Shown piece by piece: positions 14,611-44,151 of a stretch of 45,046 nt of DNA. The notes under the pieces were generated by a model. That model ran no database searches. It was not told where the DNA came from and saw only the letters and a program-made list of their open reading frames with translations. The DNA is from Trichosphaerium sp. ATCC 40318 (lineage: Eukaryota > Protista > Tubulinea), in assembly GCA_038496445.1 (NCBI GenBank), contig JALMLS010000193.1:1-45046 (forward strand), given 5' to 3'. The first letter of the stretch is position 1, and every line of letters starts with the position of its first letter. Made by a program: the position numbers and the translations under genes.

Positions 14611-15591
14611 CTTGTTGTTATACTGCAGGTTGAATCAATGCGTGGTTTATTAGGTCTTTTCGACAATTACAAAAGGGTACAAATGATAAAAAATTATTGT
14701 GGGATGTGGTTCACTGAAGTATAGAGTTTACGCTAGACAGTTGAGTAGAGCTAGATTACGTAAGCATTCCACAATGCTTAGCAGCTTTAAAACGTGCTGT
14801 TAAATGAGGATATGGAGTGTGAAAGCGTAAAAATATGTTGTGAGCGTGAAAAAAATTATTTACTAAAAAGACAAGATAGAGATGGCAGAAATACAACCCA
14901 GGCAGGTTACGGACGGAAACGCAAAAGGCCCGACGGTCCGCGGTCACAAAATCTCAGAACCTTCCATCTATTGACCTACTCACTGTGCATGTGATATCCC
15001 ATCGTTTTTTTTTCATAAGCCTAAAATAATTCAGTTTAGAAACTATTATTTCGCAGCTTAATGCTCGTAGGTAAGGGTTTATAGGAGTTAACCATTCGCA
15101 TTCGGGGCATTAAAGCAATGGGAGGTTGTTCTGTACACATATATCTTCGTTGGCAACCTATTGGAATAGATAACACCATATGATTATTAAGGTGATGTAT
15201 TCTCTTGGCCCAACAACAACAAAGACTATATTGCGTTGTGGCAATATGTTTAGCTGTACCTAAACTTCATACTAGCACATTAAACAATTAATCAAGAAGG
15301 GTTTGCATGTTGATTATAGAGCTTGTAGCACCTTAACATCGTAGCCACTCATCACAGTTGTGCCTACATCTGGAGGTGCTGTTAGCGCTGTTTAAAGTCA
15401 CGAATAGACAGTCAACCAATAGCCCCTTCGGTACGACCTCGCAGCAAAGGGGATCTCGCCTTTGTAGCAGTGGTTGAATAGTGCTACACTGATACAAGTA
15501 GAAGACTTTGATGTACCACCTTCAGTGAACCGCTGTTGTCAGTTTGTTTCTAAACTCTGTCGTTTAAACGAGCTTGCATCTTGGCTTCAAA

Positions 15592-17077: not shown

Positions 17078-17926
17078 ATGGAAACTAATTCCCATAAGCT
17101 TCGCAGTATTGAAGTCGAGAGCATCGATCAAATCAAAACCCTTGCCAGGAGTCCTTTACATAATACAGAGATTTCTTTGTTTAGCTTGAAAGACACGTTA
17201 ACAGACAGTCACTTGCGTTTACTGTCAGGTGTACATACTATCGACTTGTTGTACTGTAAGAAACTAACAGACAAGGGCGTACAGGCATTGGCTGGTGTAC
17301 ACACTATTTCTTTAGCATTTACCAATGTAACTGATGAAGGCGTCAAGGCATTGGCAGGTGTACATAAAATTGATTTAGCTTTTACTGGAGTCACAGATGA
17401 AGGTATTTCTGCATTGGCAGGCGTACATACTATTGATTTGTCTGGTTGCAAATTGATAACTAGTAAGGGTATTAAGCCACTGGCAGGCGTACACACTATT
17501 ACCTTAACTGGGTGTGAACTTATAACAGATGATGGTGTCAAGGCGTTGGCAGGAGTACACACTATCAACTTGCATTACTGCAAATCTATAACGGATGAAA
17601 GTGCCATGGCATTGGCAGGTGTACATTCTATTAATTTATCATGTACATCAGTTACAGACGAAGGTTTAAAGGCATTAGCAGGGGTACACACTATTGAACT
17701 AGCGTTGACAACAATAACAGATGAGGGTATCACGGCATTGGCAGGTGTACATACTATTAATTTATCGTGTACATCAGTGACAGATAAAGGTTTGAAGGCA
17801 TTGGTAGGGGTACACACTATCAACTTGACGTTTTGCAGTGAAATTACAGAGGATGGTATCAAGGCATTGGTGGGCGTACACAATTGCACACGAGATGACA
17901 AGACACACCCTTGGAGTTCATTGTGA
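17078..17926 (+). CDS. Tandem LRR protein (11 LxGVH units, 21-22 aa each), intronless
   Basis: Highly regular 63/66-nt repeats of the form LAGVHTIxLxxxxxTDxG; the nucleotide framework GCATTGGCAGGTGTACAYACTAT is strongly conserved. Confidence 0.88.
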   Translation: METNSHKLRSIEVESIDQIKTLARSPLHNTEISLFSLKDTLTDSHLRLLSGVHTIDLLYCKKLTDKGVQALAGVHTISLAFTNVTDEGVKALAGVHKIDLAFTGVTDEGISALAGVHTIDLSGCKLITSKGIKPLAGVHTITLTGCELITDDGVKALAGVHTINLHYCKSITDESAMALAGVHSINLSCTSVTDEGLKALAGVHTIELALTTITDEGITALAGVHTINLSCTSVTDKGLKALVGVHTINLTFCSEITEDGIKALVGVHNCTRDDKTHPWSSL

Positions 17927-18172: not shown

Positions 18173-20550
18173 ATGCAAGTGGGACAACGAATGCAAGCAA
18201 ATAGAGGGTAGTTCGCTTTCTGTCGGGACAAGAACCCGACCTTCGCTTATCCTTACATATAAATTCTTACACTGCCAGTTTTGCTCGCACTACGTCAGCG
18301 CAGAAGAAGATTACACGTTGGTTTCTAACTGTTCACTGAACGTTTTTCAACCCCGCGTATTGATTACTGAAAACGACTTGTTTTTGGACTTAAATTCTGT
18401 GAAGTTATTAATAGATATCCAGACTAACTAGCGTTTGAGTTGAACAGCGTTTTATTATTACCTTTATAAAGCTGTATACTATTATTGCAGCAGAATGGGC
18501 TACAGATGGCATCCCTCAAATTGTTTATGGGTTATGACTTGTTGCGCATGTTTACCCATGTACGAGACGTTTTAAATGATAATTAAGCGGTTTATTGCTT
18601 TTTTTTGTCTCAAAATGCTAAAACGAGGTTTAAACTTTAAAACTAATGCTCACGTAGTGCGTCAATACTTAAAGTGATTATATTCATAGTTCCAGTCTCT
18701 TTGGCGATATTTTTATCGTGTACTCTCATAGCAATATTCTTTATACCGTTTAACTTAGTGTACGTATATCCTGGACGCGAATAAAGACGAATAGCATAAA
18801 AAAGAACAAAACTCAACCTTATTCGTCGTATTACTGCTTTTTTCTCTAAATGACCGCCTAGAATGACTGTATGGAGTCTTATATTCACAAAAAAAATAGG
18901 AATAAACCTAAAAATACTCACCTTCTTGTACGTCACGCATAATCTACCATAAAAAGAAAGTTCGTTCCGCCTGCTCGATATCACTGACTTTTTTTGGCTC
19001 TAGAATCCTACCTCTTGGATTTGTTCTTTGGGTACCAATGGTAATAGTAGGATCATTATTATTTGGTCTTGGATATGGAGTGTTTAAGCCTATAGAAGTC
19101 ACGTGGGTAGGTAGAATGACATCTGAAAATCACGAATACAAAAAAACAATTTATTTCGATTTCATTGGTTCTTATGGTCTTCGATTCTAGGATAAAAGTA
19201 ACAATCCAGTTCTTGGATATTGGGGAATCATAAAAGGAACATATCACATGATTAGGATATTTACAAAATACATTGCGGTAGGATACTTTAAGAAAATGAA
19301 AAAACTAAGAAATACTTCATTACCAGCTGGTGTACGTTTCTCCATCTCTTTCTTCATATTAACCAAACTGAGTTACAACTTTATCCTAATAAAACCATAA
19401 AAGAATTTTTGTTTTAACATTATCACGTGATTGGTTTCACTCAAAACCAAAAACTGTTCTAACTTTATTCTTAGAAAAAGCCGTTTGACATCAAGATATA
19501 TCGTACGTAACGAAAACTTACCATCTTTTAAACTAACTTCTTGTTTTAAACAGAGATTTTCTTCTGCTTATTAACTTCACTATGGACATTGATATTCTGC
19601 TTCATCTGTATTCTTATTGGGTACATAGTTAAGTTCGTACCAGGTGTTGTACGTATTACCCAAAAAATCATTGTTGTGCTTTCTTTAAAGAAGGACCAAA
19701 AGTGGTTCGACAGCCTGGGGTAGAAACCTCAACTAGACCCTCCTGAAAAGGATATTTGATGTTTTTCGTTTATTGATGTTGCCATGCTAACGTATGCTAG
19801 TGTAAATCATACTACTTCCTGTGGAAATTTTTTATCCATGAAACTGGTTGTGTTCTGAAAATGCTCCTGCTTATCCCCTTTATTCTTGCAAACATACTAC
19901 TTATTCCATTTGCTGCTGCTGCTACTCCTTTCGTCGCATTATCGGCTGTTTATCCAGCATTGGCAGTGGGTACGTACTTTGATTTCGTCGACATTGGTTT
20001 TTTCAAGCGTTTTTAATTTTAATTTTTTTTTCCCACTTACTCTTGCTTAGTCCCTGTTACATACACTTATGGTTTGGTTATGGGATTGTATTTCCCATTT
20101 TCTACAATAGCGTTTTATGATAAAGAAACGAACAGTTACATATTTGGGGGCGGTTACACATGCTTCAAATGCTGGAGAGTAGGTTACAAGGCAAAGAAAA
20201 AAAAAATGAAGCAAAAGAAACGTGCAAGAAAAGGTGGTGCAAGACCAGCTCCAGTACCAAGACCAACACCAACACCGACGCAAGCTCCACCACCACCAAA
20301 GCTGAAAAAGAAAAAAGTTGTACAGAACCAAGGTGCCCCTGTAGAAGAACTTGGTGCCGGTATGGCCGCACCTAATACAGGTGCATCTGCTTCGACTCCT
20401 GCTACTACTACAGCTCCGAAAACAAATAACGCAGCTGACGGTGCTGGAAACGTTAATGTGGATGATAGTAGCACTGCATCAAGCAAATCTTTCAAGGTGA
20501 AAAAACCAAACAAGTATGCAGTGAGTATTTCAGAGAGTTGTTCAATGTAG
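18173..20550 (+). CDS. Multi-pass membrane protein resembling the plant At3g27390 uncharacterised family, with a Lys/Pro-rich tail; multi-exon, 5' end tentative
   Basis: Spliced exons ASILKVIIFIVPVSLAIFLS, MTVWSLIFTKKIGINLKIL, LPLGFVLWVPMVIVGSLLFGLGYGVFKPI, KKPFDIK and VKFVPGVCKSYYFLW follow the motif order I recall for that family. Confidence 0.7.
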
Positions 20551-20936
20551 GAAGAGGTGCCTAACATAAAATAGAAAATAAAAGAAAATCTAGTTCAAAT
20601 TCTTTGACATAAATTATCTACCTTTCTACGTTTTCGATTTGACCACATTGTATCATACACTGTTGATGCCAATTTCACCAGTTGAAACACCACCAACCAT
20701 AGTAAGCTAAGGCAACGATACAGTGCCAATTAAATTCACTTCTTTCAAAAAAAGAAGAAGAAGCAGGAACTTCGTATACTCCACCCATTATTCCTTAGTA
20801 TGATATTATACTCATACTTCTAATCTAGATATATTGTAGTTCAGTGTACTAGAGTGAAGAGTATTGTATTTCTAGCTATACTTTATTGTATACAAAGATT
20901 CTTGCTTCTGTGTTAACTTTGAATAACCAAAACAAA

Positions 20937-22224
<1,288 letters not shown>

Positions 22225-23522
22225 CCGTCTTAGCCTTTCACCAGTCAATTGTTAAGTAAACTAAACTCACGTTGACCCAAATATAGACAAACGCCTAAAC
22301 ATGGCATTGTTAGATTGAAAATGTTATTTTGAGAAGAGTAACGGCGAAAAATAATTGAAGTTGCTTTTTTATTTCGTACGCAACATTTTTGGGTGTAACA
22401 CTAAATATTGTAATATGTAGTCCGCATGAAGTGCAATTTATTATTTCTGTATGATTGCCAACAGGTAATACACTTTGTTTGGCAACAAAGAAATAGTCTC
22501 GTACATGCTACGGGTGGCCTCAACAAAGCAACCATCGGCGTTGGAAAGCTAAATGCATCTAACTTTGGGAGGTTCACAATTTTCTTTCCATCCGATGAAT
22601 GGTATCTTGTAAGAGATAAAGAAATTCACGCCTTCTAAATTCACACCATTGTCAGCAGTTTATTGCACTCCCAATGATGATAAGAGCTCTTCCTATACAT
22701 ACGAAATTAGCACAATTCAATCGTTAAAACATAACAGGATGACAATACACAAACTCCACTGACCTGAAAAAAGTAAGAAAGACATATTGAGAGAAGCATG
22801 TTAAACTCAAGCCTTTTGTTATTAATCGTAAAGGTAACAACCAGCAATGACTTTTTAACAATTAAAATGTTGTTCCGATTTAAGTTGCTCAGGTAAGCAC
22901 AAAACCTAAAGCCTTTTTGTGGAGAGCTCATTCCGTGTTTGATTAGATCACAAATTACATGTGTCAAGACATTGCGATTACGTAAAACAATCCTATTGAT
23001 GCATGCATCGTACCATCGCAGTCACCTTTAATAGTACCATGACCATTTCGTACTTCCAAATCTGGCAAATGGATCATGGGCACTGTCAGGAGCAGCGATT
23101 GGCTCCATTTGATTAGGTAATGTATCTTGAGCTAGCTCTAAAAGACTTGGTATGACTGTATGTGATCTCTTATGACTATAACGAGTTATAATACAGTTCC
23201 AGTGTTAGGTGTGAGAGAGAAAATAGTATACACAAAGTACACTCTTATTCCAACTAACAACAACATTTGAAATGTTTTCAACTCAATATCTGCGTCATCC
23301 ACAATGTAAACCCAAGGGTTTAAGTTTCTTGGCAGATTGTCCAAAATCTCAGCCAAAATCCTATGGCTTGATTACCAGTTATATGCACAAAAATCACAGA
23401 ACTATAAGTTTCATTCCTTCCAAAGTTAAGAACCTTCCAAACGAGGATTTGACATTCTAGCCTAACGCACCCAAAGTCGTTGAAAGTCTACATAAAAAAA
23501 CAAGTCCTGCGTCTTGTAATGC

Positions 23523-24579
23523 ATGTTTAGTCTTTTGCACGGCACGTACAAGTATCTATTTGCACCAAAACGGTTTGCCGTTGTTATATTAGGTTTAGAT
23601 AATGCTGGAAAGACGGTAAGTAGTACTTTAATGCGGTTGTAATGAGTTTCTAATAACCAAAGACGTTGCTAGAAAAAACCAAGCAAATTCTTACAGATGG
23701 GCCTACAATCGATCCCTCACGCATTATTCCTACTGTAGGTCTCAATAGTACGCGTTTTAAGTAATAATTAAAGTAATACTGACAAATACACGTGAAAGTC
23801 GGTAATGTTCATGTTAATAAGGTTGAAATCAATTTTTGGGACCTCGGAGGTGAAGTAAGCGCAAATTCTACTCATAAGAGATGTTTAGATATCTACAATA
23901 CAAAAATCTAAACTTCCTTAACAAAGGCTGGCCTTCGTGGTATATGGAACAGATACATAGAAGACGCTAATGCGTATATTTTTTGCGTTGGTACGACACC
24001 AGCAACTTTTTTTTTGAAAGAAAAGAAAAAATTCTCTAGCGTCTCTACGTGCCGTGCTGCGCCCTTGTTGATGTTGATTACTTTAGATGCAACTGATGAA
24101 AGCAGATTTGATGAAGCTTTGAGAGTATTCAATGACTTGATGCGTCGTAGTGAGACAGATGAGCGTCCTGTATTAATATTAGCAAATAAATGTGAAGAAG
24201 ACTCATCCCACTCTGCAAGAGAAATCCAAGACGTTTTACAAATCCTAGTACGTCTTAACTAAAATGTCCGTTTACTCAAATACAAACAAGTAGATGGAAT
24301 AGTCAGAAAAATCAACTATTTTTTTTTTTGCTGTTTTTTTTTTATTTTAGAACACTATGTTACATTCTTATTACTGTACAAGGATAGTAGAGGTGATCGC
24401 GAACGTTTTAAAATTCTTTCTGTTTCAGCGAAAACAGGGTACTTAAAAAGTCAATAGACTTCTTTTTTGAACGACTACACACCAGAAACTAACTTATTAA
24501 TCATAGCCATGGTATAGAACACGCTGTAAATTGGCTTTCTGGAGCGTTACAGAACAAGTCCATTGCGCGTAGTGTATAG
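23523..24579 (+). CDS. ARFRP1: ADP-ribosylation factor-related protein 1 (ARFRP1, yeast Arl3-type GTPase), multi-exon
   Basis: MFSLLHGTYKYLF N-terminus without Gly2, ILGLDNAGKTT, IIPTVGLNIG, FWDLGGE, LILANK, VSAKTG. Confidence 0.92.
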
Positions 24580-29584: not shown

Positions 29585-31752
29585 ATGCCAAGGCAAATTC
29601 AGGTCATAGTACCAGCAGGTACATCATTTTTTAACGTTATCCTGAAACAAACGGCGTATTAACAACACTTCAATAGGTGCTGCTAGCTCATCACAGATAC
29701 AACCGTCCATAAACGCATTGGTTAAATACCTAAAAGCGAGTCCACACGCATTTGCAATTAGTACGTTTTTGTCTCGATCATTTTTGGTCTCTAGAAGATT
29801 CCACTTGCTCTAGCTTCTGCTACGTACTATTAACATTTTGAGTGCATGAGTTAACTTGCTTTTTTTGAAATAAAACGCCTAGAGCTCTTGAGAGGGTGTT
29901 TTTAAGCGTAAAATCGTCGATCATAACGTTAAAATCGGCGATTGGATAGTTTACCGGTTTTTGTATTTAAATCAACTTTTTCGCACCTCTGACGTGTCTT
30001 CTAGCTGAATTTCGAGGTGTAGATGCTACTATGTTTCAATTCAGATGTACTGACAAACACGTGGGTATTATAATGGATGATATGGCAGAATTTGGAGCTG
30101 GTATTGACTTTGGGGTTATAGACATTTTACCTCTTCAATCCACCAAACCACGGTTAGCTACAAACCATATCACGCCTCTGAATAGGAAAAAATACAAGTA
30201 CGTCCATCACAAGAGGTGTGGCAACGTGCAGTGTGCCTGTAAAAAAATAGCTTCAAAGTTGCAAAGATATTCCAGTTTTTTTTGGGTTGTTTGTTGTACT
30301 CTTATATCGTTTGATAGGATGTCTGATCGTATGTCAATAGAAGAAATATATGAAACTGTTGATAGTCAATTACATTTGACGTTTGATTATTTAGCTATGA
30401 TTGTTGTTGCCGCAATTATTGCTGGTAAGTAAATTACTGGCTTTTTTTTGGACATGTGCAAATGACAGAATTGACGCCTTTTCTTAAACAGGAGCTGGTT
30501 TAGCTACCGATAGTTCAGCATCCGTTGTGGCCTCAATGATTGTTTCACCACTTATGGGACCTAGTACGTACAGAAAGCATTTAAAAGAAATTTTTTTCGT
30601 TTGGAAGAAAAAACAAAAAAAAGTCTAACCTCAACATGTCAGTTATGGGTCTCACGTTTGGTACAATTATCAGGTGCGTTACAATATATAAACTACGTAT
30701 TCAACTATTTTCTTACCATACTCTTTTTTTAAATAATGTGATAGGAGTAAGACTATGGTTTATAAAGGGTTTAGAAATGAGGTTTACGGATTAGTATTAA
30801 CGTTTATTGTTGGCGTTGTTTTTGGCATTGTCCTCTTTTTTACAAGTGTACCTTGGCCAACTGTTGAAATGACATCAAGGTACGTAGTTATAGTATTTTT
30901 CACATGGTCTATCCTTGAAAAGAACCTTTCAATTCTTTGTTTAACAATCACGTTTTTGAAAAAAATACAAAATATTTAACAATTGTTTATAGAGGTACAT
31001 TATCCTCCTTATGGGGAGGTATAGCAATAGCAGTACCTAGTGGTGCTGGGGTAGCATTAGCACTAACTGGACCATACTCTGGTGCTTTAATTGGTACGTA
31101 CTGATTAAGTTACATCCAACAATAAGTTCCTAAATGTTGGCACATTTAGGTATTGCAATTAGTGCAGCTCTACTTCCGCCTGTTGTAAACTCTGGTATGA
31201 ACCTAGCATATGGTATTTTAGCTATCATATTAGACTACAAATCATATGAGCATCAGGGTTCAGGTGTTAAATCTAAAGAAATGGGTAAGAAGTGGTTAAG
31301 TATCGCTGAATACTCTTTTCTACTTTTTCTACTGAATTGGATTTGTATCTATCTCACTGCTCTACTTGTATTTTGGGTATGCCTAAGACTTTATTTTCAG
31401 TAAAAAAATAATTGAGTACGCTAATAATAAACATAGATCAAACAAGTGGGCCCAAGAAAGCGTAACTCAGCAAAGAAAGGTAAGTATCTTTTTGTTGTTT
31501 TTTTTTTTCTTCGAAACCAGAAAAAATTTTTGTGCATGTGCATGCCACGTGACTTAATATTGTTTTTTGCTGTTATTAAGTTTTTCTTTAGATCGTAGAC
31601 TACAATCTGTAGTTGAAGAACCAAGGAAAATAACATCATCATCTAACTTGAACGCACTTCTACTCAGTGATGATGATGATAGTGATTCGCCTTTATTGAA
31701 TAATGCACTTCTTGCCTCTCCTTCTTCTGATATATCAATTATGTCAACCTAA
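29585..31752 (+). CDS. DUF389 family membrane protein, multi-exon
   Basis: MPRQIQVIVP start; FDYLAMIVVAAIIAGAGLATDSSASVVASMIVSPLMGP, IAIAVPSGAGVALA, GIAISAALLPPVVNSG. Confidence 0.9.
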
Positions 31753-32062: not shown

Positions 32063-35000
32063 CTACTCCGTAACCTTCAGACCTCTTGTTTAAATATGAT
32101 TGCAATAATTCTTGTTTAAAGAGTCACTTAAAAATGGTGTAGAGGTTTGTATCAAAAATACAACAAAGGTTTGTTTGAAATAGGCACTGATTGTTTTTAT
32201 TCGCTTATCAACTTGAACACTTTTTTCTCTATCAAGAGGATTGATTGAATGTCAAAAGAGTTATTCCTTTCTTTCTCTCTTTGATTTTGCTTCCTTACCT
32301 TTTATCTTTTTTTTCCTGTAAAAGCAAAAATGTCAACAACAAAATCACGTGCGAATTTTATACACGTACCCGCTTTCAGCAGATCCCCAAGGTACATCCT
32401 CACGACGTCCCTCAGTGAATGGATAAATGTACACAGTATATTTTTCAACCTTGTTATGATTCTCAGCAAGCCATGTTGCATCATAACCGTTTTTCTTATC
32501 AAACTCGATTGTTGCATAATTCCTTCTCATTATATGTGTCTTTCCAGTCTTGAATTTATGAAGAGCGCCTTTAATCAATGGTGATACTTTATGTACTTGA
32601 TAGGCTCCAATAACATATAATCCTTGTTTTATGAGAGCATCTAAATTCATGTGAATTAGAGAAGAGCACAAAAAAAAAAGCAAAAAAAAACAAGCTTTAG
32701 ACGTTGTGAGTATTGGCTGGTGTAGTAGTTAGAGCGCTAATATGTAGATAGATAACTGACTATGCTATGAGTTATATGTGAGTTTCGTACTTGATACACC
32801 TGGCATTGATCCGATGCCTGAAGATACGATGTTATTTACAATTGTAGAATTATTTGTAATTTTTTCTCCATCTTCTGTCTTAGCCATACTCAATACACCA
32901 TGTACTGCAATATGCGCGTCTCCTGATAGTATAGAAAGCCTACAATTCTTTTGTGCTCTTACAAAGTCGAAGAGTTTATTGACAAGAAATCGACGCTCTT
33001 CTTTATGGTGATGAGAACTCCATTGATCTATCAAGTCATCAGCGACTTCAGCTTTGGACTTTTCAACAATCTACAGTTTGTATGAGTATGTAGTAACATC
33101 ACGTGATTTTGAAATTATTTGACTGTTAAATCACGTGCCTTATCCACGAAAGCACCTAAAGTGTTGTATATTACGGGTACAGGCGACACTAGGAAGAAGT
33201 GATGGATAGGCTTGCTTTTTAGCGAGTCGAGATAGGCGTCTATTGCTTCATACGTTTGTTTGCTTAATATTTGCTTTATCGTCCTTTCAGAGCGGATATC
33301 TAGCGTAAGAAAAGCTATGTTATTCACATACTGAGCAAATGTAAAATCTACAATAGTGACGTCAGATTAAAGTTGAAAGAAGGCAACTTAGGTTTTCTAT
33401 TTTTAGAAATAAACTTACGACTTTGTCCTGGAAGGAAAATACTCATGCTTTTTTTCTTCTTTATGTCAATTCCAAACTGAAATAATAATGTCATTTCTCT
33501 CGCTATAGCATATATCCCTTGAAATACATCCGAATTTTGTACCATATCTGGGTACTTGTTGAGTCAAAGAACAAAGCAGAAAACAAAGAAAAATCCAAAA
33601 AATAAAAGGTTTGGAAAGATACAGATCCAAAGCCATCAAATATGTCATGATCTAGTTCGCTGTCAGTACCATTATAGTAACAAAACTACAACATACCGTC
33701 CCATGTCATTACTGAAGGTACTTGACCAAGTACACGTCTAATATCTGAATGTCCCCAAGTCTCGATATATTTTGAGACATAAAAATCTGTTACTTCTTTT
33801 TTTAGCTTTGCTGTGAACTTCCAATCACGTTTTTCTTCCTCACTGGAATCCCAAAACATCTTTCCATCTTTATTTCGAAGACTTGGTAACTAATCATACG
33901 CGTAAACAACTAAAAGTGTAATTTTCTTTCAAAAAAAAACTCGCAAAAGAAATTCACCATGACATGAATCTATCACGTGTTTTTTATTTGAAACCTTCAA
34001 AACAGAAGTTTGATAAAATGATGCTTTAAAAATAAGTTTTTCGTACCTCCCATATTGAAGGGTAAGGAGCATCAGAATAAATTTGATCGCCACCTTGAAA
34101 AATCAAGTGATATTTTTGTCTTGTATGTGTTTTATACATATGCTTCCATAATTGGAATCCTAGCATTCCTCCCTTTGGGTCACTCTCTGGAGCGTTACAA
34201 CTACAGAAGAACAAACGTAAAGGAGTAAGAAGACCAGGTATCTGAATGCAAAATGAGCAGCTCAAATGACGAGAACAGGCAGCCTTTAAAGTACCTCAAC
34301 TTCATATTTGTCCATACCTATCTGGTACGTAATTGTCTTTGCCTCCTCGACTTGTTTAACAGTAAATTCATATTTCATAAGTTTAAGATGCTTCCAAGAC
34401 GCAAGTCGTGTTTGTTTAACCTTCTTCTGAGGCTTAAAATTCAAACGCAAGTCAGTATCTAAAAAAAAAAAGTTAAACCAAAAAACCAAAAAATTAGAAA
34501 ACCCGGTTATCTGAAACTCGAGTAATATTCCTCTTGCCTTTAGCGATTGTCTCATCAACAAGTATAAGTATACATAGCTTATATTCTCCCATTTCATTAC
34601 TCCCTTTGAACAAAATAACTGGTCCAAGTGGTACACCTTCAGTTTCTTTCCTTGCTATCGAACAATGTTAGCTTTAAAAACGATTGTTGATGTTTTCTGG
34701 AGTACTGAAAATTTGATTCTTGTTGATATGTCCAAAGCACTGTTTCTCCGGTCCACGCCAAATAAAATCACTATAGGTTCTCCCTACACCTTTAAGTTGT
34801 ATGGAGCTTCCAGATTTCGTCAGTGCTGTCTCTTTAGCAGTAGAAATACGTTCGCTTTTCATTCCTTTCGCTGGTCCTTTTTTGGCTTTCAATGGTTTTG
34901 TGCCTACAAGATAACGTATTCAATCAGCCTTGCGTCAGGTATTGATAATAGATCATCGTACCTCCCCATGAAAGAAATTGTACAACTTTTCCATTATTAT

Positions 35001-35393
35001 CTACAACAGCAACACCACTACCTTTAGAAGAGTCGTCCAATGTTAATTTGAAGTAAAGAACGCCCCATCCATTCTGCATATCTGAAAAAGTGCCCTTCAA
35101 ATCAAAATTACCAGCTACTTTACAGCTCTTTGCGTTATAAAAATATAACGACCAACCGTCAAGGCACGTGCCTTTAAAAAAATTACTGATGAAAACGCAC
35201 ATGATCAAATAAAAAACAACTTTGTGCTGTTTTTTTTTATAAAAGAAGGCGTACCAGCAGGTCCAGCGAGTTCGATACCTTCGCCTATGTCAACTAGAAA
35301 GTTTTGATAGTGTATTTCGTTTATAAACACGCTTCCATCCTCATGAATTACTTTATCATAAGTATCACCTTGTTTACCCTCAGGTGCCGCCAT
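32063..35393 (-). CDS. Lamin-tail-like (bacterial extracellular nuclease-associated) domain fused to a PhoD-like metallophosphatase; multi-exon, 3' end approximate
   Basis: N-terminal VFINEIHYQN..GEGIELAGPAGTCLDGWSLYFYN..VVQFLSWGG..GPAKGMKS..SIQLKGVG. PhoD motifs CSCN, GGDQIYSD, DDHDIFDGFGS, LDIRSERT, DDLIDQW and ILSGDAH. Confidence 0.88.
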
Positions 35394-36062
35394 TGATTTT
35401 ATGTTTATCTGTTTTGTTTGATTACAAATATGGATTTTTATTTTGTAGTACAAAAAGTCAATTTGCGTCATCTGTGATTCAACTTGCGCGTGTTTATCAC
35501 GCGACATTGCAACATGCGCTAATCTTTCAGTCACTTATCTGTAGCCAATACAATTTGATAAAAATACAGCTTATGTAAAGGGCTTTTGGTCTTTAACTTA
35601 AAAGAACAGGCGTTAGAGATGGCAGTGTTATTTCATTGATTTTCTTAACCACGTGATTGTCATGTGACTATAATGTCCCATGTTACTACCTCTACTAATA
35701 GTTGACTTTGTTAGTTCAACCAAAATTGAAACGATAGAATTTTAGTTTACCATTAGGTGTTTGATGATAGATAACCCGGCAAAAAAGTAGACTTTGCAAT
35801 CAAAACTTCACTACTTCAACAAACAGCTTCTGTGGTTAGATTCCTTTGTGGACCTGAGTATTGATATACTGCAAGTATGCTTGATCTCACTTGATTGCAA
35901 AAGACATTGCTAAATTTCATACATTTACATTAGCAGAAGCGTTAATGCTCCATTTTGATACAACAAGCAGTTTAGGAAGTAAACTGTAGTCTGATTCTAC
36001 TTGTTGTATGTTTATTGATTCTTTACAATGATAATTGGTACACCAAGTATGGTTTTGCGATC

Positions 36063-36458
36063 TCAGCAGCTTCCACAAGCAGCTTCACTCCAGCAACACC
36101 ATTTATCACTTCTGATGCGAAAGCATAATGGAGATCCAGGGTAGCAGTATGCAGTTGAACCTAAAAAAAGTAAGTATTAAGAATACCATTCTTTGATTTT
36201 TCACATACATTGACCATTCTTTTCACGACCACGTTTACGCCATCCAGGAGGACACCATCCATTTGTATCACATGTTTCGCCACACAACAATGGTCCTTGC
36301 TAGTGGCACGTTAACATACAATGTAGAAGTAGGGGTCGACATACCTCAGTTGATCTCTTTTCGTGCATATCTGGCATTTCTTCAGAGTCTTTAGATTGGA
36401 CCGCCAAGGCAACAGTTAATGCCATGAGTACAAAAGCAAAAAGAAAAGTTGCTTTCAT
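36063..36458 (-). CDS. Secreted cysteine-rich prepropeptide, copy A (3 exons, 100 aa)
   Basis: Spliced product MKATFLFAFVLMALTVALAVQSKDSEEMPDMHEKR-STEQGPLLCGETCDTNGWCPPGWRKRGREKNGQCSTAYCYPGSPLCFRIRSDKWCCWSEAACGSC*, with two canonical GTATGT...TAG introns. Confidence 0.9.
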
Positions 36459-36812
36459 TGTTCTATGAGGTGTGGTTGTTCTTGTTATGGTTTGTATTTA
36501 TAATCAGATATCAATATGATTTAAGTCTTACGTGAAATGTTACGGTAAATTATTAATCTGTTATCGGGTTGAAGCTTTGTTATGCTGTCTAATACTGTTT
36601 TTACACCCAAATATAATGCTGTTTCTGTTAGCTGTATTGATACCAAAGAGATTATGGATAAAAGATTTAGCGAAAAAGAAATGAGGTAAACGACTTACGA
36701 TACTTTATTTCAGTGAATAACCAGACTTAAAATCGATGTCTAAGTGCATTCAAACAAAACCAAAATATAAAACAACAACCAACAACAAACCTCTTCTTCA
36801 AACAAACAACAA
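36459..36812. promoter_or_regulatory. Divergent promoter region between the two peptide genes
   Basis: TATAAA on the minus strand at 36497-36502 and TATAAAA on the plus strand at 36766-36772, each about 40 nt from its ATG. Confidence 0.6.
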
Positions 36813-37225
36813 ATGAACACAACAATTTTATTTGTATTGGTGACTTTGGCATTGATACCAATTGCCTTGACGACCCAATCTAAAGACTCTGAAGAAATGC
36901 CAGATATGCATGAAAAGAGATCAACTGAGGTATGTCGACACTCCCTAGTTCTACATTGCATGTTAATTAATGCCCCATTCTAGCAAGGACCATTGTTGTG
37001 TGGCGAAACATGTGATACAAATGGATGGTGTCCTCCTGGATGGCGTAAACGTGGTCGTGAAAAGAATGGTCAATGTACGTGAAAATCCAAAAGTGGTAGC
37101 AAACTTCTTAGTACTTACCTTTATTAGGTTCAACTGCATACTGCTACCCTGGATCTCCATTATGCTTTCGCATCAGAAGTGATAAATGGTGTTGCTGGAG
37201 TGAAGCTGCTTGTGGAAGCTGTTAG
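36813..37225 (+). CDS. Secreted cysteine-rich prepropeptide, copy B (exons 36813-36929, 36984-37074, 37128-37225; 101 aa)
   Basis: MNTTILFVLVTLALIPIALTTQSKDSEEMPDMHEKR followed by the same 65-aa, 10-Cys peptide as copy A; AATAAA downstream. Confidence 0.9.
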
Positions 37226-38668
37226 TCACTAACAACTTTACTGTGCTTTTAATCAAATAAAAACAACTTAGTTAAAGTACACAATGGAGTTTATTTGTTA
37301 AACCCTTTCATTTTGCTCGTATTACCTGTTTAAGAAGCATTGATACACTCTTGCGATATTCCTTTTACTCTTCGGAGCTTGTTTCGGATTCATCGAACAT
37401 ATCTGTGACTCGCATGATCGTTCAGTATATTACAATCAGAATTGTACTATGCGTGGTAGTACCCAAGAACCCAAGCTGAGATAATCAACATTTCTTCTTA
37501 ACATATACGGAAATAGGTTTAAACCTGTCCAATGCTTTCGTGCTCTCTTCTGTCTCAAATGCTCTTCTTTACACTATTGGGTAGTAACGATTTTCTCATA
37601 CGTATGCTTCGTAATCATCCATCTTCATGATCTCAGTGATGTAATCAGAATGTACAAGAGCGCCCAACATGTGCGTTTCACCCTCTCTCTACCAACTCAA
37701 TGTATTTGTATCTGTCCAGATTGTTCACTTGACCAAGTAGATATGTTATAGGTACTCAATGAGCACAATTACTCTTTGTATAGTACCTATTGAACCGATA
37801 GTAGTCAAGAGCCTCCTTTCTTTGCATAGATGTTCGGATTCTTCTAGTGACTCGGGAGCTGCGCTCTTGTCAAAGGATTTCAACGCGAGCTCAATCTTCT
37901 TGCTAACATCTCCGTCTCACTAATGTTTATTATTCTCATTTTTAGTCCAAAATTAAACCCTTTGCGATGTGTTAGAATTCAGTCAAGTCTTACATATTAC
38001 ATTTCTTCCAGGACATACAAGTCAGCACAATGAATTTGTTATGAATTGCCAGCTGGATACTTTAAGGATTAACAACTGTTGTCAATTTGTAATGCAAGTA
38101 GTGACAATTAGGTGGCTTTACCGTCATGTGGTAGCCTTTCATAGTACTCACGATACTTACGTTTGCACTGTACTAAGACACTAGTTGGCAGTTTTCTACA
38201 GACGTGTGGTAAAAAAAAAAGTCGTTCCTAGTAAGCAACCAGCAATACATTTCTCCGAAGGCGCAACAAGTCTCCAAGGCACGGCAAGCAGTGATCGCGT
38301 TGTAATAGGATTTGTAGTATTTATTCACTATGCACATGGTACGTACGATGCGCATACTGCGCCTTAGCTTTGTTTTTGAGGCTATGCTTTAATAACAAGC
38401 ACAACTACCCGTTGGGTTTTTTTTTTATTTGATTTATGCTGTAAGAACAAAACGGCGCAAAAACACGTGATTTCTTAGAAATAGGACATATCACGCGTCA
38501 CATGCCAAATTTCTTGAAAACTAGTGCGAACCAGGCAATCCAGTTGTTTACTCAGTACAAAACTACTTATTTGTAGTTCTTACAACAGTAAGGCCAACAA
38601 ACCAGCAGCCTAGCTTGACTGACACAAGATAATATTTTTGTACTATTATCTAACATTTTTCTTCGTAG

Positions 38669-39646
38669 TATTCTAGTCCCTTGTGTAAAAGAAAATTGTG
38701 CAATGAATTGGATGCTTTGACTTTATTGGATATTCCATGTGAACTTCAAACCTATATTTGTACTTTCAACATTGAAACATTCACGAAATTCCACACTCTA
38801 TCAAAGAGAGCTGCAACAAATACTCATTTTAATGAAGTATTACAAAGAAAAGGGATATGGATAAGATGGTATAAAAGTGGAAAGGTGAAGTCTCATCAAT
38901 ACACAGTAAATGGGTTGATTAAAGAATGGTATCCAAATGGATCACTCAAGGAGCAGTACATACAAGTCAATGGTAAAAAAGAAGGTGAGTGGTTGTCATG
39001 GTATGAAAGTGGACAACTTCAGGTCCAATCCATGTGGGTTAATGATAAACAGCATGGTGAAAATAAAGCATGGTATGACAACGGACAACTACTATACCAT
39101 GCCATGTGGGTTAATGGTAAACTAAATGGTGAATTTAAAAAGTGGCATAACAATGGACAACTTGCGCAACAAGCCTCATGGGTTGATGGTAAACATACTG
39201 GTGAAAGTAAAGGATGGTTTAAGAATGGCCAATTACAGTATCTATTCATGTGGGCCAATGACAAACAACATGGCAAACGTAGAGATTGGTATGAGAATGG
39301 ACAACTTGAAGGCCAATCCATGTGGGTCAATGGTAAACAAACTGGTGAAAGTATAGGATGGTACGAAAATGGACAACTTCAGGACCAGTCCATGTGGGTT
39401 GATGATAAACGGCATGGTGAATGTAAATTATGGTATGAAAATGGACAACTTAAGCGCCAGTCCATGTGGGTTGATGGTAAAAGACACGGAGATATTAAAT
39501 GCTGGTATGAAAATGGACAGCTTAAGAGCCAGTCCACGTGGGTTGATGGTAAAAGACATGGAGATATTAAAGGCTGGTATAAAGATGGAAAACTAAAGTA
39601 TCAATCAATGTGGGTTGATGGTAAAGAACAAACTATAATTGTGTAA
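38669..39646 (+). CDS. F-box-like + about 10 tandem 24-aa MORN-variant repeats; first exon unresolved
   Basis: LLDIPCELQTYI motif, then regular 72-nt repeats GExxxWYENGQLxxQSMWVDGKxH. There is no ATG near the 5' end of the ORF, but a CTAAC branch point and acceptor AGs at 38668 and 38676 imply an upstream exon (candidate ATG 38502). Confidence 0.85.
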   Translation, partial: YSSPLCKRKLCNELDALTLLDIPCELQTYICTFNIETFTKFHTLSKRAATNTHFNEVLQRKGIWIRWYKSGKVKSHQYTVNGLIKEWYPNGSLKEQYIQVNGKKEGEWLSWYESGQLQVQSMWVNDKQHGENKAWYDNGQLLYHAMWVNGKLNGEFKKWHNNGQLAQQASWVDGKHTGESKGWFKNGQLQYLFMWANDKQHGKRRDWYENGQLEGQSMWVNGKQTGESIGWYENGQLQDQSMWVDDKRHGECKLWYENGQLKRQSMWVDGKRHGDIKCWYENGQLKSQSTWVDGKRHGDIKGWYKDGKLKYQSMWVDGKEQTIIV

Positions 39647-40252
39647 CCTCTTAAATACATTAGTTAAGTACGGATACTACAGGACAATGTTTGTGCCGTA
39701 AAGCGTCATCCTTTGGTGTATTGCCCCATCTATCTTTTTATCACATAAGGCGCCTACATCAAGCAAGAACTTAACCAATGATACTTTTCTTACCAGTGAG
39801 CGTCTGTACGAAGTGTAGCAGATCACAACCAAAATGCCCTCTCTGACATATCAGAAACGTTGCAGGAAACATCTGTAGAAGTGTAGGAGCACAACGTAAA
39901 CATACAAAAAATGAAATCAAAGTTCTGCATTGTTACTCTAAACATACTATTTAACTGAATGTCGTATCCACATTGTTGTGCCCAATAACTGTTCAATACT
40001 CGTACAAGTAACTGTCAAATAAATAAACTCCTTTGTTTACACAATGGCTACTACTGTTTTTAAAGTTCATAATGATGACTCTTTCGATTTTTTTTTATGT
40101 AATAAAACTTTTGTACAAGTGTTTTTTTTTGTGGTTTTTTTTTTAATCACAATCTCCTTTTCTTTTGATTGCCAGACGTCTGTACGACTTCAGAAAAAAA
40201 ATAGAAGATATGACATATTTACTGAATGCTCCTTGGTCAGTGTGTGGATAAC

Positions 40253-41995
40253 TTAAAAGCACTCTGCAACAATCCCTGGGTCAAGATCAGGTAAGTCTTC
40301 AAAAATCTTTTTGTTTGTTTGAGCTGAATTAACAGGGTTTGACTTTGGGAATAAACTGTTCGTCTTTTGGTTATAAGCGTTTCCAGGCTTTGTATATTGA
40401 CCCATACCAATACTTGGATATCCATTTACCATTGTATCACGTGGTTGAGCCATTATAGTTGTATCAAGACGAGGACGTTTACTTTCATGAGAAATAGAAT
40501 CAAGACGCATTGAAAGGTTCTTATCATCTCCTGGTGCCTTCCTTTTTACGTGAGATGGGCCATCTTGGTGTTGTATTAGGTCATTTAATGTTGCTTTAAG
40601 CGTTATCAATTTCGCTACAAAAACCACTGTAAGCACGTGCAGTGAGAAACAAAAATAAAATTGTTGAAAAGAAATCTTCCTAAAGCGTTACCTTTCTCTG
40701 CACGTTGTGACCTTTCTATGAGCTCTTCTAAAATCTTTATCAACCCAATAAGTTCTATAGCTCTATCATATTCTCTGGCATTTAGGAGGGAGTCTGCATA
40801 CTCTACAATTTGGTCCCTGAAGAAAGAAATTAATCACAACTACTCACAGGAGTTGACCTCGTACCTCAAAGGTTCAAAATCTTCTGCCGTGCTTGGTAAG
40901 CCTGCTGCGATGAGACCCTATAATAAACAATCAGTTTGTGTGACTCATGTTGTCACTATTTCGGAAAAATATAACGAACCTTATCTCGAGCAATACCTAC
41001 TTGATTGTTCCACTGTTGGAACTCTTTATCTATCGCAAAAACGTTAACAAACATATGTAAAAAAAGATTTAAAAATAACTAAGTGTAGCTAGCGCACATC
41101 ACGTGACAGCCTTTTTATTTTATCGAATATTTTGGTTTAAAAAATACGTACACATGCGTTCAATATTGTGCTCTTCATCTGATATTAATCTACGGGGAAT
41201 ATCGCGACCTATAGATAAAGTTAAGGCCTAACATTGAAGGTTTTAAGTTTTATTTCAAAACATTTCTCATCCTCAAACTCACCATTCTCTTTCCAAATCA
41301 TCTGTGTCAATAAATCGTGCGTTGCAACTAAGTATCAAATAAGCTGATAGCAAACAAGAATAGTAACACAATAAAGAGTAACCATGCAAAGCAAACAAAA
41401 TAAAAATAGAAAATAATAAAACAAAGACCTTACCTATCGATACACGAGCCTTGTTCATATGTAAATAATTTCTATAATGCTCCTTATCCTTATCAAAGCT
41501 GTTTTGCCATGAGGTATTTCTGTATATTACATGCACAGTCTGCATACTCTCTGGGCATTTTTCTCGCACCTACAAAATGAATAAGCTTTTTTTTTTTGTA
41601 ACATTTTGTTAAAACAAAAAATGGTTCACTGAGCCTTACCCTTGCGCAAAACCAATACTCTACACCATCCATAACAGACTGTACTTCAACGTATGTTCCA
41701 GCATGAAGTTGCTTTCTAAAAAGTACGTCAGACAAGACCAGCAACGCAGAAAAAACGAAAGAACAAAAAAGAACAGCGAATAAAAAATGTTTATGATGTT
41801 CATTGCGTTCTTGTTAATTAACACAATATTGTTTGATTGATATCTATCAACGTACTCCTTTGCTAAGACCTTAGGCCTTTGTTTTCGTAACTGCCACTCT
41901 TCAACAGTAGTCACATGATTTTTTCCCCATTCAATGACGTAGTAAGGAATAACAATACCAATAACAGTCTTACATCCGAGATCTTGTACTCTTGC
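40253..41995 (-). CDS. Hypothetical protein with Tudor/Agenet-like N-terminal domain(s) and a helical C-terminus; multi-exon, start upstream unresolved
   Basis: Exons ARVQDLG..YYVIEWGKNHVTTVEEWQLR and LHAGTYVEVQSVMDGVEYWFCARVREK..VHVIY resemble Tudor-fold strands; NLS-like KRK and KRPR; canonical splice sites. Confidence 0.55.
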
Positions 41996-44151
41996 CTACA
42001 AAAAAAAAAACGAAACATTAGCACGTGCAAAATTCATGTGATAATTTTTCTTAAAGTACTAAGGTGATTGGATACACATAATGAAAACGAAATTTTTTAC
42101 GCTCAAAGGCGACAAAAGGGCAAAGACGAGAAAATTTTTCGGTTTTTTTCGTTTGTTTTTTTTTTCAGACTTAGAATACGGCTAAAACACCGCGAACGGT
42201 ATTATTTTATTGGTGATAGTTTAATGCGATAGTTAAAACGGGTCGTTATAGAATTTAGCGCGAAATGAAAAAAAAAAAAAAACAGACAAAAAGTCTGGGC
42301 GTAAAATGATGTTTTATGAATTCTGGAATATGCCTGTAGGTTAATCGAAAGGTAATTAATACGAATAAGGTAATAGATTGACATTTAAATACGAACAAAA
42401 GAAGTTAATCAAAAACCCAAAAAAAAATATCGCATTTAACTCGTTATATTGCTCGTATATAATAACGTACCGATAGCCATGCGAACGAATGGTACGACTC
42501 TGCGCCTGTTAGAAGGAATTCAACATTTTCGCCCTTGACGAACTTGTGGCGCTTTTTAGTATAGTTAGGGTGCCGTATGGACTTGTTTACGCATTCCATC
42601 ACCCTGTAACGTTTTTTAGCGGGCTGAGTGATAAAACAACCTTTTGAACGATTGATAAGAACAATAGAATAAGAGCATTAAAGAATAAAGATGTTTGAGG
42701 TGTTGTGGCGTAAAAGAAGAAAAATAAAGGGCGGAAAAGTTTCAACCCTCACTTGTCATTGAAGTGTTATGAAATGCTTTAAAATGACGTGAAAGAGTTA
42801 CTGCAATACAGGAAAAACCAAATGTTGAGAATATTGAAGTGCCTGTTGACAAAAAGCTCGTTTTGTGAGTTAAAATTACTAGGCGTTAGGTGTGAAAAGG
42901 CGTTTTGATATTTGTAATGATTTCTCAAGCGAATTGAAGAAAAAGCCACAAACTCGTTATTAAAATAATTGTGCTGTTACCTTGAGGGAGCGCAGGTGTA
43001 TGCGGCGTAAGTAACTTGGAAAATATGAAATCATTTGACTGTATGTGAAACCACTTGTCACTCAAGCCCGCACAAGTACGAAAACAGACTTGTCTACAAT
43101 ATTCAGTTGCTTTCGCAATAGTTCCCAATACTCAACCAAAAAAAGCGGTAAATGTTGTTTTTCATTTTAGTTGGCTGCTTTGCACCCCCAGTTGCGCTAT
43201 TAGCGCGCAAAAATGCGGTTATAACGCAATGATATCGTACATGTCAACCACAGTGAGTGTTTGTGGTAGAAAAAAGCAAAACCGGTGTTTGCGTTACACA
43301 AGTAGGCGGCTTTGCGTTAGAATACAATATTAATTGCGCTTGTGCTCTTTTACATTTTGTACATGGTTTTTGTTTAAACCGCTAGTTTGTTAGGGCGTTC
43401 TACAATGGATTCTGCAGTTGATCGAAGGAGCTTGTACGTAAAGGTTCTCGTTTTGGTTTACTTAGGCTGTCAAGTGTCATCATTTTTAAAGTTTTGAGTG
43501 CAATGATGGATGGGATGCTACAAACAATAAGTAACAACGTCTTTTAGCGGTTTCGTAAGTTAAGAGGTTTTTGTTAAACGAAAAAGAAGTGGTTGGCTGC
43601 CAAAGTGGTTTGGGTTGTAATAACGACCGCAGTAGCTTCAAATAGAAGTATTCACAAAAATAGTGTAGTAATGTAAAGGAGAATTCGTACAATTTGGGTT
43701 ATGATGCTTCTCTGTCGTACTTGGGAGTGTGTCAATCTGCTCCGAAAAGCGATCTGGCCCGTGGTGCTGTATTACCCATAAGGCGTATGGATGTTGTAGA
43801 ATACGATATAGACGCGAACCCTTCTCTATTGGCTGCGTTGAACGGTGTTTTGATGACTTTGCAGTGTTTTTTCTAGAAATAGGCAGTTCTCGTCTATGAA
43901 TCGCAAAGTCGAGTATTTGAGGAGCGCTCATGTCAGTTCTTAATGGCTAGATTTATTTTAATCGGTTTTTTTAAGGCACGTAAGGCTAAGCAAGGTTCTT
44001 TCATAGATCTGTACTTTACCAGACTTTTTGCAATTAGAATAGTCCAGTACTTACAGGTGCCCTTTGCACTCGTACTATGTCATATCATGTGCAATTACAT
44101 TGTTTAGTTGAAATTAAGTATCACATGGTTATTTATTTTGTTAAAACAGAT

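Follow-up and report, generated by a model that had tools for sequence, protein, structure and literature searches.

A head-to-head pair of spliced genes predicted to yield one secreted ten-cysteine peptide in a probable Trichosphaerium-like amoeba

Animals, fungi, plants and ciliates rely heavily on small, processed, disulfide-rich peptides for defence, predation and signalling. To our knowledge, almost no such peptide has been characterised from free-living Amoebozoa, and our literature search for comparable amoebozoan peptides returned nothing relevant. Small secreted cysteine-rich proteins processed by Kex2 or furin, among them fungal SSCPs and effectors, killer toxins, and the prepropeptides of animal venom and defence peptides, follow a common order of parts, consisting of a signal peptide, a short acidic pro-segment, a dibasic KR and a compact core with an even number of cysteines. 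The gene pair described here, located in a 45,046-nt stretch of DNA (the window), shows the same order. By analogy, it most probably works like the Kex2/furin-processed small secreted cysteine-rich proteins, although Pfam, PDB and phmmer searches reveal no sequence relationship between the pair and these SSCPs, killer toxins or venom prepropeptides. We know of no cysteine framework among such processed peptides that matches the one encoded here.

We postulate, with belief and doubt in rough balance, that the locus consists of a pair of intact paralogous genes, each with a promoter of its own, in what is probably a Trichosphaerium-like marine amoeba, and that both encode a secreted, disulfide-stabilised peptide belonging to an orphan family. 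Transcription of each gene would start at its TATA promoter within the common 354-nt spacer and run outwards, and each transcript would lose two short introns by splicing. The product of 100 or 101 amino acids would enter the ER by means of a cleavable signal peptide, and its ten cysteines would pair into five disulfides. A kexin-like convertase would then cut after EKR, releasing the same ~7.19-kDa peptide of 65 amino acids from both genes.

A sequence-only reading had placed a divergent pair of three-exon genes at 36063-37225. Both models could be rebuilt with open frames and canonical introns, and these limits coincide exactly with the two stop codons (Table 1). All four introns are of the GT..AG type and 45-54 nt long, and their retention leads to a stop; intron 1 of the minus-strand gene, if read through, ends at an in-frame TAG. 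For the donor of intron 2 in the plus-strand gene, 37074 is the only position tried that has a GT next to it and keeps the frame open; this final base of exon 2 opens the split codon of Cys34. The introns share their style (GTAAGT/GTATGT..TAG) with confident neighbouring genes, such as that for isopentenyl-diphosphate isomerase (IDI). Each ATG is the first in frame after the upstream stop and carries an A at -3. Within 35900-37400, TATAAA occurs once per strand, and each TATA box is followed by a C/A-rich leader. The two upstream regions resemble each other no more than shuffled sequence does (50 of 300 shuffles reach the same score or better), and the spacer DNA shows nothing unusual in its fold. 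The Cys/Trp pattern of exon 3 has 0.00 chance occurrences expected in the window; together with the repeat arms, this places the gene pair far beyond chance. From their sequence, both loci very probably represent genuine expressed genes.

Table 1. Features of the divergent gene pair, in coordinates of the window.
Feature	Position	Strand	Remarks
Minus-strand gene, ATG to stop TGA	36063..36458	-	100-aa precursor, spliced translation open
Minus-strand gene, exons	36458-36345, 36299-36209, 36160-36063	-	Rebuilt from sequence
Minus-strand gene, introns	36344-36300 (45 nt), 36208-36161 (48 nt)	-	Both GTATGT..TAG
Plus-strand gene, ATG to stop TAG	36813..37225	+	101-aa precursor
Plus-strand gene, exons	36813-36929, 36984-37074, 37128-37225	+	Rebuilt from sequence
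Plus-strand gene, introns	36930-36983 (54 nt), 37075-37127 (53 nt)	+	GTATGT..TAG, GTACGT..TAG
Plus-strand gene, exon 2	36984..37074	+	N-terminal four-cysteine half, including GWCPPGW and WRKRGREK
Plus-strand gene, exon 3	37128..37225	+	C-terminal six-cysteine half, C-x6-C-x8-CC-x5-C-x2-C, and stop
Signal-peptide coding part, minus-strand gene, MKATFLFAFVLMALTVALAV	36399..36458	-	Predicted from hydropathy (11-residue mean 1.9-2.8), then small-residue A-L-A
Signal-peptide coding part, plus-strand gene, MNTTILFVLVTLALIPIALTT	36813..36875	+	Predicted; one-codon indel relative to minus-strand copy
Acidic 15-aa segment QSKDSEEMPDMHEKR, minus-strand gene	36354..36398	-	Ends in KR; from sequence
Acidic 15-aa segment QSKDSEEMPDMHEKR, plus-strand gene	36876..36920	+	Ends in KR; from sequence
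Spacer between the two ATGs	36459..36812	.	354 nt; not repeated; one TATA box per gene
TATA box of minus-strand gene, TATAAATA	36502-36495	-	44 nt before ATG
TATA box of plus-strand gene, TATAAAA	36766-36772	+	47 nt before ATG
AATAAA, candidate poly(A) signal of plus-strand gene	37256..37261	+	31 nt past stop codon
AATAAA, candidate poly(A) signal of minus-strand gene	36011..36016	-	47 nt past stop codon

Both precursors begin with a predicted signal peptide. Over residues 1-20 the 11-residue mean hydropathy lies at 1.8-2.9, followed by A-L-A or A-L-T, and rules of thumb recognise an n-region, a hydrophobic core of 10-15 residues and small residues at -3/-1. The hydropathy profile contains no second hydrophobic segment, and secretion of the precursor via this signal peptide appears likely. 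The acidic segment QSKDSEEMPDMHEKR (pI 4.9, net charge -2) differs between the copies by one synonymous change (His CAC/CAT) and is joined to the mature domain by a dibasic KR, reading E-K-R and then S-T-E in both. The typical hydropathy profile and the sequence thus bear out the proposed arrangement of a signal peptide and an acidic segment ending in KR. The identity claimed for the two products applies to the 65-aa peptide but not to the precursors, which differ in length (100 versus 101 aa) and in their signal peptides, alike at only ~9 of 21 positions and unequal in length by one residue. Each precursor is a single unit without internal repeat, rather than the several KR-separated units of the fungal KEX2-processed repeat proteins (KEPs).

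Judged from the sequence around it, cleavage at the KR falls only slightly short of an even balance. The strongest alternative, which we hold tentatively, is that the KR is no processing site and that the final product is a protein of ~80 amino acids with an acidic N-terminal tail, an outcome compatible with any function. Kexin and furin often prefer an aliphatic residue or Arg at P4; here P4 is His, and the furin consensus R-x-K/R-R is absent. Furthermore, the acidic segment is identical in the two copies and constrained like the cysteine-rich part, in contrast to the variable signal peptide beside it. Since its conservation equals that of the mature part, the acidic 'propeptide' may not be a discarded spacer. 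On the other hand, propeptides can stay conserved by assisting folding, and an acidic stretch with E-K-R immediately ahead of a cysteine-rich domain is a classical Kex2-type context, for which L-D-K-R of yeast alpha-factor serves as a comparison. Kexin-like enzymes also occur in Amoebozoa, with three such genes in Acanthamoeba (bioRxiv 10.1101/802215).

The mature peptide common to both genes comprises 65 amino acids (7.2 kDa) with an even count of ten cysteines, arranged as C-x3-C-x5-C-x14-C-x4-C-x6-C-x8-CC-x5-C-x2-C. This framework, the four Trp and the WRKRGREK stretch had all been described beforehand, and all are present in the rebuilt peptide. The WRKRGREK stretch had been described as cationic; the peptide overall is no more than weakly basic (8 K/R versus 6 D/E, net ~+1.4, pI ~8.05). 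For an antimicrobial peptide that acts on membranes, a net charge of ~+1.4 is low.

Several known peptide classes share partial features with this framework. The C-C-CC-C-C cysteine order is seen in many knottins, and the six cysteines of exon 3 by themselves follow it; in contrast to knottins, the last exon-3 loop of two residues is shorter than usual and four extra cysteines lie in exon 2. With the EGF-like hairpin (C-x-C-P-P-G-[FWY]-x-G-x-x-C) the peptide has in common W-C-P-P-G-W and, after it, a Gly-rich loop that ends in a cysteine, but it has a single cysteine before PPGW and 14 residues, not 4-8, to the next one. The EGF signature C-x-C-x2-[GP]-[FYW]-x(4,8)-C is accordingly absent, W-C-P-P-G-W being followed by 10 residues before the cysteine. 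Of the cysteine-stabilised alpha-beta defensin pattern, C-x3-C is present and C-x-C is not, and there are 10 cysteines instead of 6-8. The precursor matches no knottin/toxin, EGF or defensin model in Pfam at E<=1.

The absence of a recognised family, proposed from the framework alone, was upheld by broader searches. The Pfam-A scan of the precursor (E<=1) gave a single match, to a phage tail tube (E 0.16) and of no relevance, and none to hevein/CBM18, CBM14 or other curated cysteine-rich carbohydrate-binding or toxin families; a word-index homologue search with the precursor produced no candidate. Among PDB sequences phmmer found nothing significant, the likenesses to the methyl-CpG-binding domain of MBD6 (E 0.5-0.9) and to the N-terminal, APT lectin-like domain of aerolysin (E 1.3-1.9) being at chance level. 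An exhaustive phmmer search of 1.84 billion representatives returned no protein with the 10-Cys framework and three matches in all, each a repeat protein without it.

Two of these, P0001 and P0003, are uncharacterised bacterial secreted repeat proteins from ordinary bacterial contigs, without a Pfam family; the significance of their E-values is raised by the repeats and by the alignment of signal peptides, which both possess, as the pair is predicted to. P0001 has 13 of 29 residues in common with the exon-2 module (G-x-L-x-x-G-x-T-x-x-x-NG-x-CP-x-G-[YW]-x-K-x-G-x-x-x-NG), and P0003 shares C-x3-C...PPG[FW] with the peptide. Unlike the peptide, they carry 2 or 4 cysteines per repeat, without the 10-Cys framework. 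The likeness is at the level of a motif and says nothing on function.

At the DNA level, the exon-3 Cys/Trp pattern matched metagenome contigs at least 120 times, those listed being only chance, and gave 55 matches, no true one, in 2.9 million viral contigs; the matches listed from both sources consist of low-complexity TGG/TGC repeats that contain in-frame stops. The exon-2 pattern had zero matches in the same viral contigs and 45 in prokaryote genomes, all out-of-frame, GC-rich chance occurrences. An exact look-up in the protein collection found neither of the precursors and none of three neighbouring ORFs. As the organism's own proteins are missing from such collections, finding no homologue there is weak evidence on relatives in poorly sampled amoebae. 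As judged by these searches, the peptide is an orphan family.

Our best guess at the role of the peptide, offered with reserve, is an abundant extracellular peptide with a defence or binding role, for example against bacteria or competitors or on a glycan surface, because an aromatic-rich, glycine-rich, disulfide-locked build fits such a role. In many toxin and antimicrobial peptide (AMP) families, such as conotoxins and amphibian antimicrobial peptides, the signal peptide is conserved and the mature part variable. The pair shows the reverse, an invariant mature part behind a variable signal peptide. Because the mature part is conserved while the signal peptide diverges, and because the net charge is low, we do not think that the sequence describes a fast-evolving arms-race toxin; the two points also speak against a classical AMP.

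A bolder reading, which we consider somewhat unlikely, sees in the peptide the first member of a disulfide-rich fold that is as yet undescribed and confined to Trichosphaerium-like amoebae; it would be kexin-matured, possibly made two-chain by a cut at the internal RKR, and would act outside the cell as a potent effector, either an antimicrobial or anti-grazer toxin or a gamone-like life-cycle signal. If true, it would be among the first such processed peptide effectors described in Amoebozoa, as far as we know. An orphan gene for a small secreted cysteine-rich protein is, by itself, common in eukaryote genomes. If the peptide is expressed and secreted, however, it offers a compact and well-delimited candidate (65 amino acids, two loci with one product) that can be made and tested directly, kexin-type prepropeptide processing would serve such effectors in this lineage, and a new fold may be defined.

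The same composition would also suit a protein of the cell coat or test with a structural or carbohydrate-binding task, for instance a small lectin-like module on a fibrous covering or algal polysaccharide, with no free bioactive peptide. Among the 65 residues are 4 Trp, 2 Tyr, 1 Phe, 8 Gly and 5 Pro, and an aromatic-, Gly- and Pro-rich composition is common in small glycan-binding modules; perfect conservation, doubled dosage and a faint resemblance, not significant at E 1.3, to the lectin-like N-terminal domain of aerolysin point the same way. We nevertheless regard a coat component as unlikely: repeats and an anchoring signal are absent, no carbohydrate-binding or wall-protein Pfam model matches (E<=1), and the aerolysin and MBD likenesses do not rise above chance.

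Less probable still is a cell-to-cell signal (gamone, pheromone or autocrine factor) that coordinates stages of the amoeba life cycle in the manner of the prepro-made pheromones of ciliates. The water-borne pheromones of Euplotes, allelic and variable disulfide-rich proteins of 4-10 kDa made from prepro-precursors, provide the nearest protist parallel. The pair resembles them in its prepro architecture and small, stable, disulfide-rich product, but shows no sequence similarity, pairs two loci with one product in place of variable alleles, and departs from them in genetic code as well as gene structure. A mature sequence so strictly conserved would suit a ligand fitted to a receptor, and Trichosphaerium, the likely source genus, has a complex life cycle that includes sexual development genes (PMC10521059). 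Against a signal, Pfam, PDB and phmmer searches gave no similarity to known pheromones, no receptor candidate lies nearby, and two TATA-driven copies suggest bulk output rather than a trace signal.

The comparison of the two copies speaks for functional genes. The arms of the inverted repeat measure 78-117 nt, with 95-97% complementarity. Exon 2 is identical at 91 of 91 nt (36984-37074 versus 36299-36209) and exon 3 at 95 of 98 nt (37128-37225 versus 36160-36063), the differences being confined to the last Cys codon (TGT/TGC) and the stop codon (TAG/TGA). The introns show 74-76% identity and contain indels, the signal-peptide coding parts share ~70% nucleotide identity, and the flanks are not alignable. 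Similarity is thus limited to coding sequence and introns and halts exactly at the stop codons. Across the 240 nt that encode the pro and mature parts, we observed 2 synonymous differences (at 46.7 sites) and 0 nonsynonymous ones at 193 sites, compared to ~23 expected at the intron rate (P ~2e-11). Eighty codons without an amino-acid change, alongside diverged introns, signal peptides and flanks, point to strong purifying selection. This pattern indicates real genes whose exact protein is under purifying selection, rather than a chance or assembly palindrome, while gene conversion, not selection, could account for part of the identity. We found no convincing further copy or cysteine-dense ORF in the window; a 21-aa likeness at 43735-43797, considered as a third copy, lacks a signal peptide and frame support.

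It is very improbable, on this evidence, that the pair is a transposon or rearrangement inverted repeat, an assembly foldback with an open frame, or a set of unexpressed pseudogenes. The pair is indeed absent from the gene and ORF tracks and from all protein collections, but splice sites, start context, TATA and AATAAA are kept in both copies, and a foldback should have left arms that are near-identical even in their introns.

The proposal of a protist source agrees with the genomic setting, which is Trichosphaerium-like: the window has 36% GC, short introns and F-box/MORN genes, and the published Trichosphaerium genome is similar in all three respects (PMC10521059), an agreement that supports the probable taxon on circumstantial grounds. 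The contig is not human. F-box-like and MORN domains are commonest in giant-virus-attributed genes of Trichosphaerium (PMC10521059) and one such gene lies 1.4 kb downstream of the pair, but acquisition of the pair from a giant virus, with a virus-related function, is scarcely credible given host-type introns, a multi-exon cellular PhoD-type phosphatase gene as upstream neighbour, no viral protein match by phmmer among the 1.84 billion representatives, and no true match of the exon-2 or exon-3 patterns in the viral contigs. Rfam and tRNA scans of the window found nothing. The homologues of the MORN and F-box/LRR neighbours are only 34-43% identical, and the named eukaryotes among them are Trichosphaerium (MMETSP) and Balamuthia.

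Two head-to-head three-exon genes, the plus gene and the minus gene, occupy the locus. Region 35700-37600 was read and the gene models were then built by script; the rebuilt models, with canonical splice sites, bear out the two divergent three-exon genes proposed by the sequence-only reading, whose coordinates 36063 and 37225 prove to be the outermost bases of the stop codons. The plus gene product comprises 101 aa (stop TAG), and that of the minus gene 100 aa (stop TGA). For intron 2 of the plus gene, 37074 was the sole donor position tried that had GT next to it and an open frame. If intron 1 is left unspliced, the reading frame runs into a TAG in each copy, and splicing is therefore needed in both. 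Both start ATGs are the first downstream of an in-frame stop and carry A at -3. TATAAA occurs a single time per strand within 35900-37400, 47 nt (plus gene) and 44 nt (minus gene) upstream of the ATG, while AATAAA lies 31 nt and 47 nt, respectively, 3' of the stop codon. Neither copy is broken; the locus is intact, with canonical signals in both genes.

Table. Position and structure of the gene pair and of other genes in the window
Feature	Position	Strand	Details
Plus gene, exons	36813-36929, 36984-37074, 37128-37225	+	scripted model building
Plus gene, introns		+	54 nt GTATGT..TAG; 53 nt GTACGT..TAG
Minus gene, exons	36458-36345, 36299-36209, 36160-36063	-	scripted model building
Minus gene, introns		-	45 and 48 nt, both GTATGT..TAG
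Three paralogous F-box-like + MORN_2 genes	1229-1942, 13698-14585, 38681-39646	+, -, +	
F-box/LRR, F-box-like, LRR_6 (RNI-like) genes	4325-5245, 15574-16512, 17078-17926	+	single-exon
Carboxylesterase (COesterase)	7307-8003	-	multi-exon; E 1e-23
Isopentenyl-diphosphate delta-isomerase	~20980-22250	-	multi-exon; human IDI1, E 4e-16, one exon
Arf-family GTPase	23912-24259	+	multi-exon
DUF389 membrane protein	30031-31403	+	multi-exon
PhoD_2-type phosphatase	32348-35534	-	multi-exon

The N-termini of both precursors are hydrophobic (mean hydropathy 1.8-2.9, 11-residue window, about residues 1-20), with small residues preceding the likely signal-peptidase site. They are followed by the same acidic segment, QSKDSEEMPDMHEKR (pI 4.9), in agreement with the signal peptide and acidic propeptide previously placed upstream of the Cys-rich part. 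The predicted mature 65-aa sequence (reduced mass 7,199 Da) is identical between the copies, as had been claimed, and contains four Trp, again as read earlier, and eight Gly. Its ten Cys, at 9, 13, 19, 34, 39, 46, 55, 56, 62 and 65, match exactly the proposed framework C-x3-C-x5-C-x14-C-x4-C-x6-C-x8-CC-x5-C-x2-C. Exon 2 supplies four Cys, the codon of the fourth being split by intron 2, and exon 3 supplies six in the order C-C-CC-C-C. The cationic character assigned to the peptide holds in part: it is basic and WRKRGREK is present, but with 8 K/R against 6 D/E (net about +1.4, pI about 8.05) it is only mildly so. The mature part lacks an N-glycosylation sequon, and the precursors lack a second hydrophobic segment.

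The two copies have diverged unevenly. Across 78-117 nt the inverted-repeat arms are 95-97% complementary; exon 2 is identical at 91/91 nt, exon 3 differs only in the stop codon and at the third position of the final Cys codon, and the acidic segment carries one synonymous His difference. The introns are 74-76% identical with several indels, the signal-peptide part has a one-codon indel and mismatches at 17 of 57 aligned nt, and 200-300 nt flanks on either side are no more similar than random. In the 240 nt encoding the acidic and mature parts, 2 synonymous differences fall at 46.7 sites and none of the 193 nonsynonymous sites differs, where the intron mismatch rate predicts about 23 differences (P ~2e-11). 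Selection has thus held the protein unchanged, and the pattern is what purifying selection leaves on coding sequence whose exons have the predicted boundaries. Divergence ranks from the signal-peptide part (30%) through the introns (12% plus indels) to exon 2-3 synonymous sites (4%). The signal-peptide part exceeds the introns (Fisher p = 0.009); the introns may in turn exceed the synonymous sites (p = 0.22 on mismatches only, p = 0.0015 when gap columns are counted). From two sequences, this suggests either an old duplication after which the short introns have also been under constraint, or a contribution to the identity from codon-level selection or from gene conversion biased towards exons. 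The purifying-selection signature argues strongly against a non-genic repeat, and a non-genic artefact is unlikely; an assembly foldback is excluded, because its arms would match throughout and these differ in introns and signal-peptide parts.

Searches for relatives upheld the earlier view that the framework is unrecognised, since Pfam, 1.84 billion representatives and PDB sequences gave no family. With the precursor, Pfam at E<=1 returned only an irrelevant phage tail-tube match (E 0.16), and a word-index search found no homologue. Exhaustive phmmer of the 1.84 billion representatives gave three matches, all repeat proteins without the framework. Two of them, the database entries P0001 and P0003, are uncharacterised bacterial secreted proteins: P0001 has 13/29 residues in common with the exon-2 module, around NG-x-CP-x-G-[YW]-x-K-x-G...NG, and P0003 has C-x3-C...PPG[FW] in common with the peptide, resemblances that we treat as motif level only. 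PDB sequences yielded chance-level matches (MBD6, E 0.5; aerolysin N-terminal domain, E 1.3). The exon-3 Cys/Trp pattern gave only low-complexity chance matches in viral contigs and, among the matches listed, in metagenome contigs; the exon-2 pattern gave only chance matches in prokaryote genomes. The window holds no further copy. The peptide and the neighbouring ORFs are absent from protein collections, where the source genome is unrepresented, so close relatives in poorly sampled protists may be missed. The peptide conforms to neither CS-alpha/beta defensin, EGF-like, hevein/CBM nor KEP patterns, and the knottin Cys order is found in the exon-3 half alone. Judged by sequence, the gene pair has no demonstrable membership in any curated family, and we file it as a putative orphan family.

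Small disulfide-rich secreted proteins are widely made by way of prepropeptides, a route that the product of the gene pair would share. By established cell biology, the precursor would enter the ER co-translationally, lose its signal peptide and form five disulfides. A kexin-like convertase would cut after E-K-R; genes for such enzymes are present in Amoebozoa, and Acanthamoeba has three (bioRxiv 10.1101/802215). This cleavage is the least secure step, because His occupies P4 and the acidic segment matches the mature part in conservation; the segment may therefore be retained or serve as a folding aid. Cleavage at the internal K-R of WRKRGREK could give a two-chain form. With low confidence, we postulate a peptide that is abundant outside the cell and serves in binding or defence. 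Rich in aromatic residues and glycine and locked by disulfides, such a peptide would be suited to stable binding of a surface or glycan, and its net charge is low for one that disrupts membranes. A role in signalling and one in structure or the cell coat are both live rivals. Many venom and amphibian antimicrobial-peptide families show the reverse of the pattern seen here, where the mature sequence is invariant and the signal peptide varies freely.

A giant-virus origin of the gene pair is unlikely. F-box and MORN are the commonest giant-virus-derived domains in Trichosphaerium (PMC10521059), and the window carries both; the exon-2 pattern had zero matches in viral contigs. The analysis identified no virus or toxin that affects animals, people or crops. 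The F-box-like/MORN_2 genes encode an F-box-like N-terminus (LPVE..LDI.DLD), followed by YwqK-type MORN_2 repeats. Their best matches are only 34-43% identical, come largely from metagenomes or bacteria and in some cases carry DUF5758; they also match Trichosphaerium and Balamuthia, the best named eukaryote match of a MORN gene being Trichosphaerium sp. ATCC 40318 (35% identity). Among 5.8 billion proteins, the F-box/LRR protein has a single homologue, the MMETSP transcript P0151 (42% identical). The start of the PhoD_2-type phosphatase gene looks lamin-tail-like by eye, unconfirmed by Pfam. Low-complexity Lys/Pro/Ala-rich open frames with no family match occupy both strands at 20023-20594. 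GC skew is locally strong and positive at 42001-44000 (0.19), where no gene was identified, and is preceded by a negative stretch at 40001-42000 (-0.11). GC content of the window is about 36%, and its genes have exons of about 150 nt and introns of 45-190 nt; the Trichosphaerium draft genome has 37.7% GC, with introns averaging 75 nt and exons 154 nt (PMC10521059). The match in these features and in gene content is good, though circumstantial, and makes a Trichosphaerium-like amoebozoan the probable source; the contig is not taken to be human. The window's introns are of GTAAGT/GTATGT...CTAAC...TAG type, for which those of the isopentenyl-diphosphate delta-isomerase gene provide the reference for the genome's intron style.
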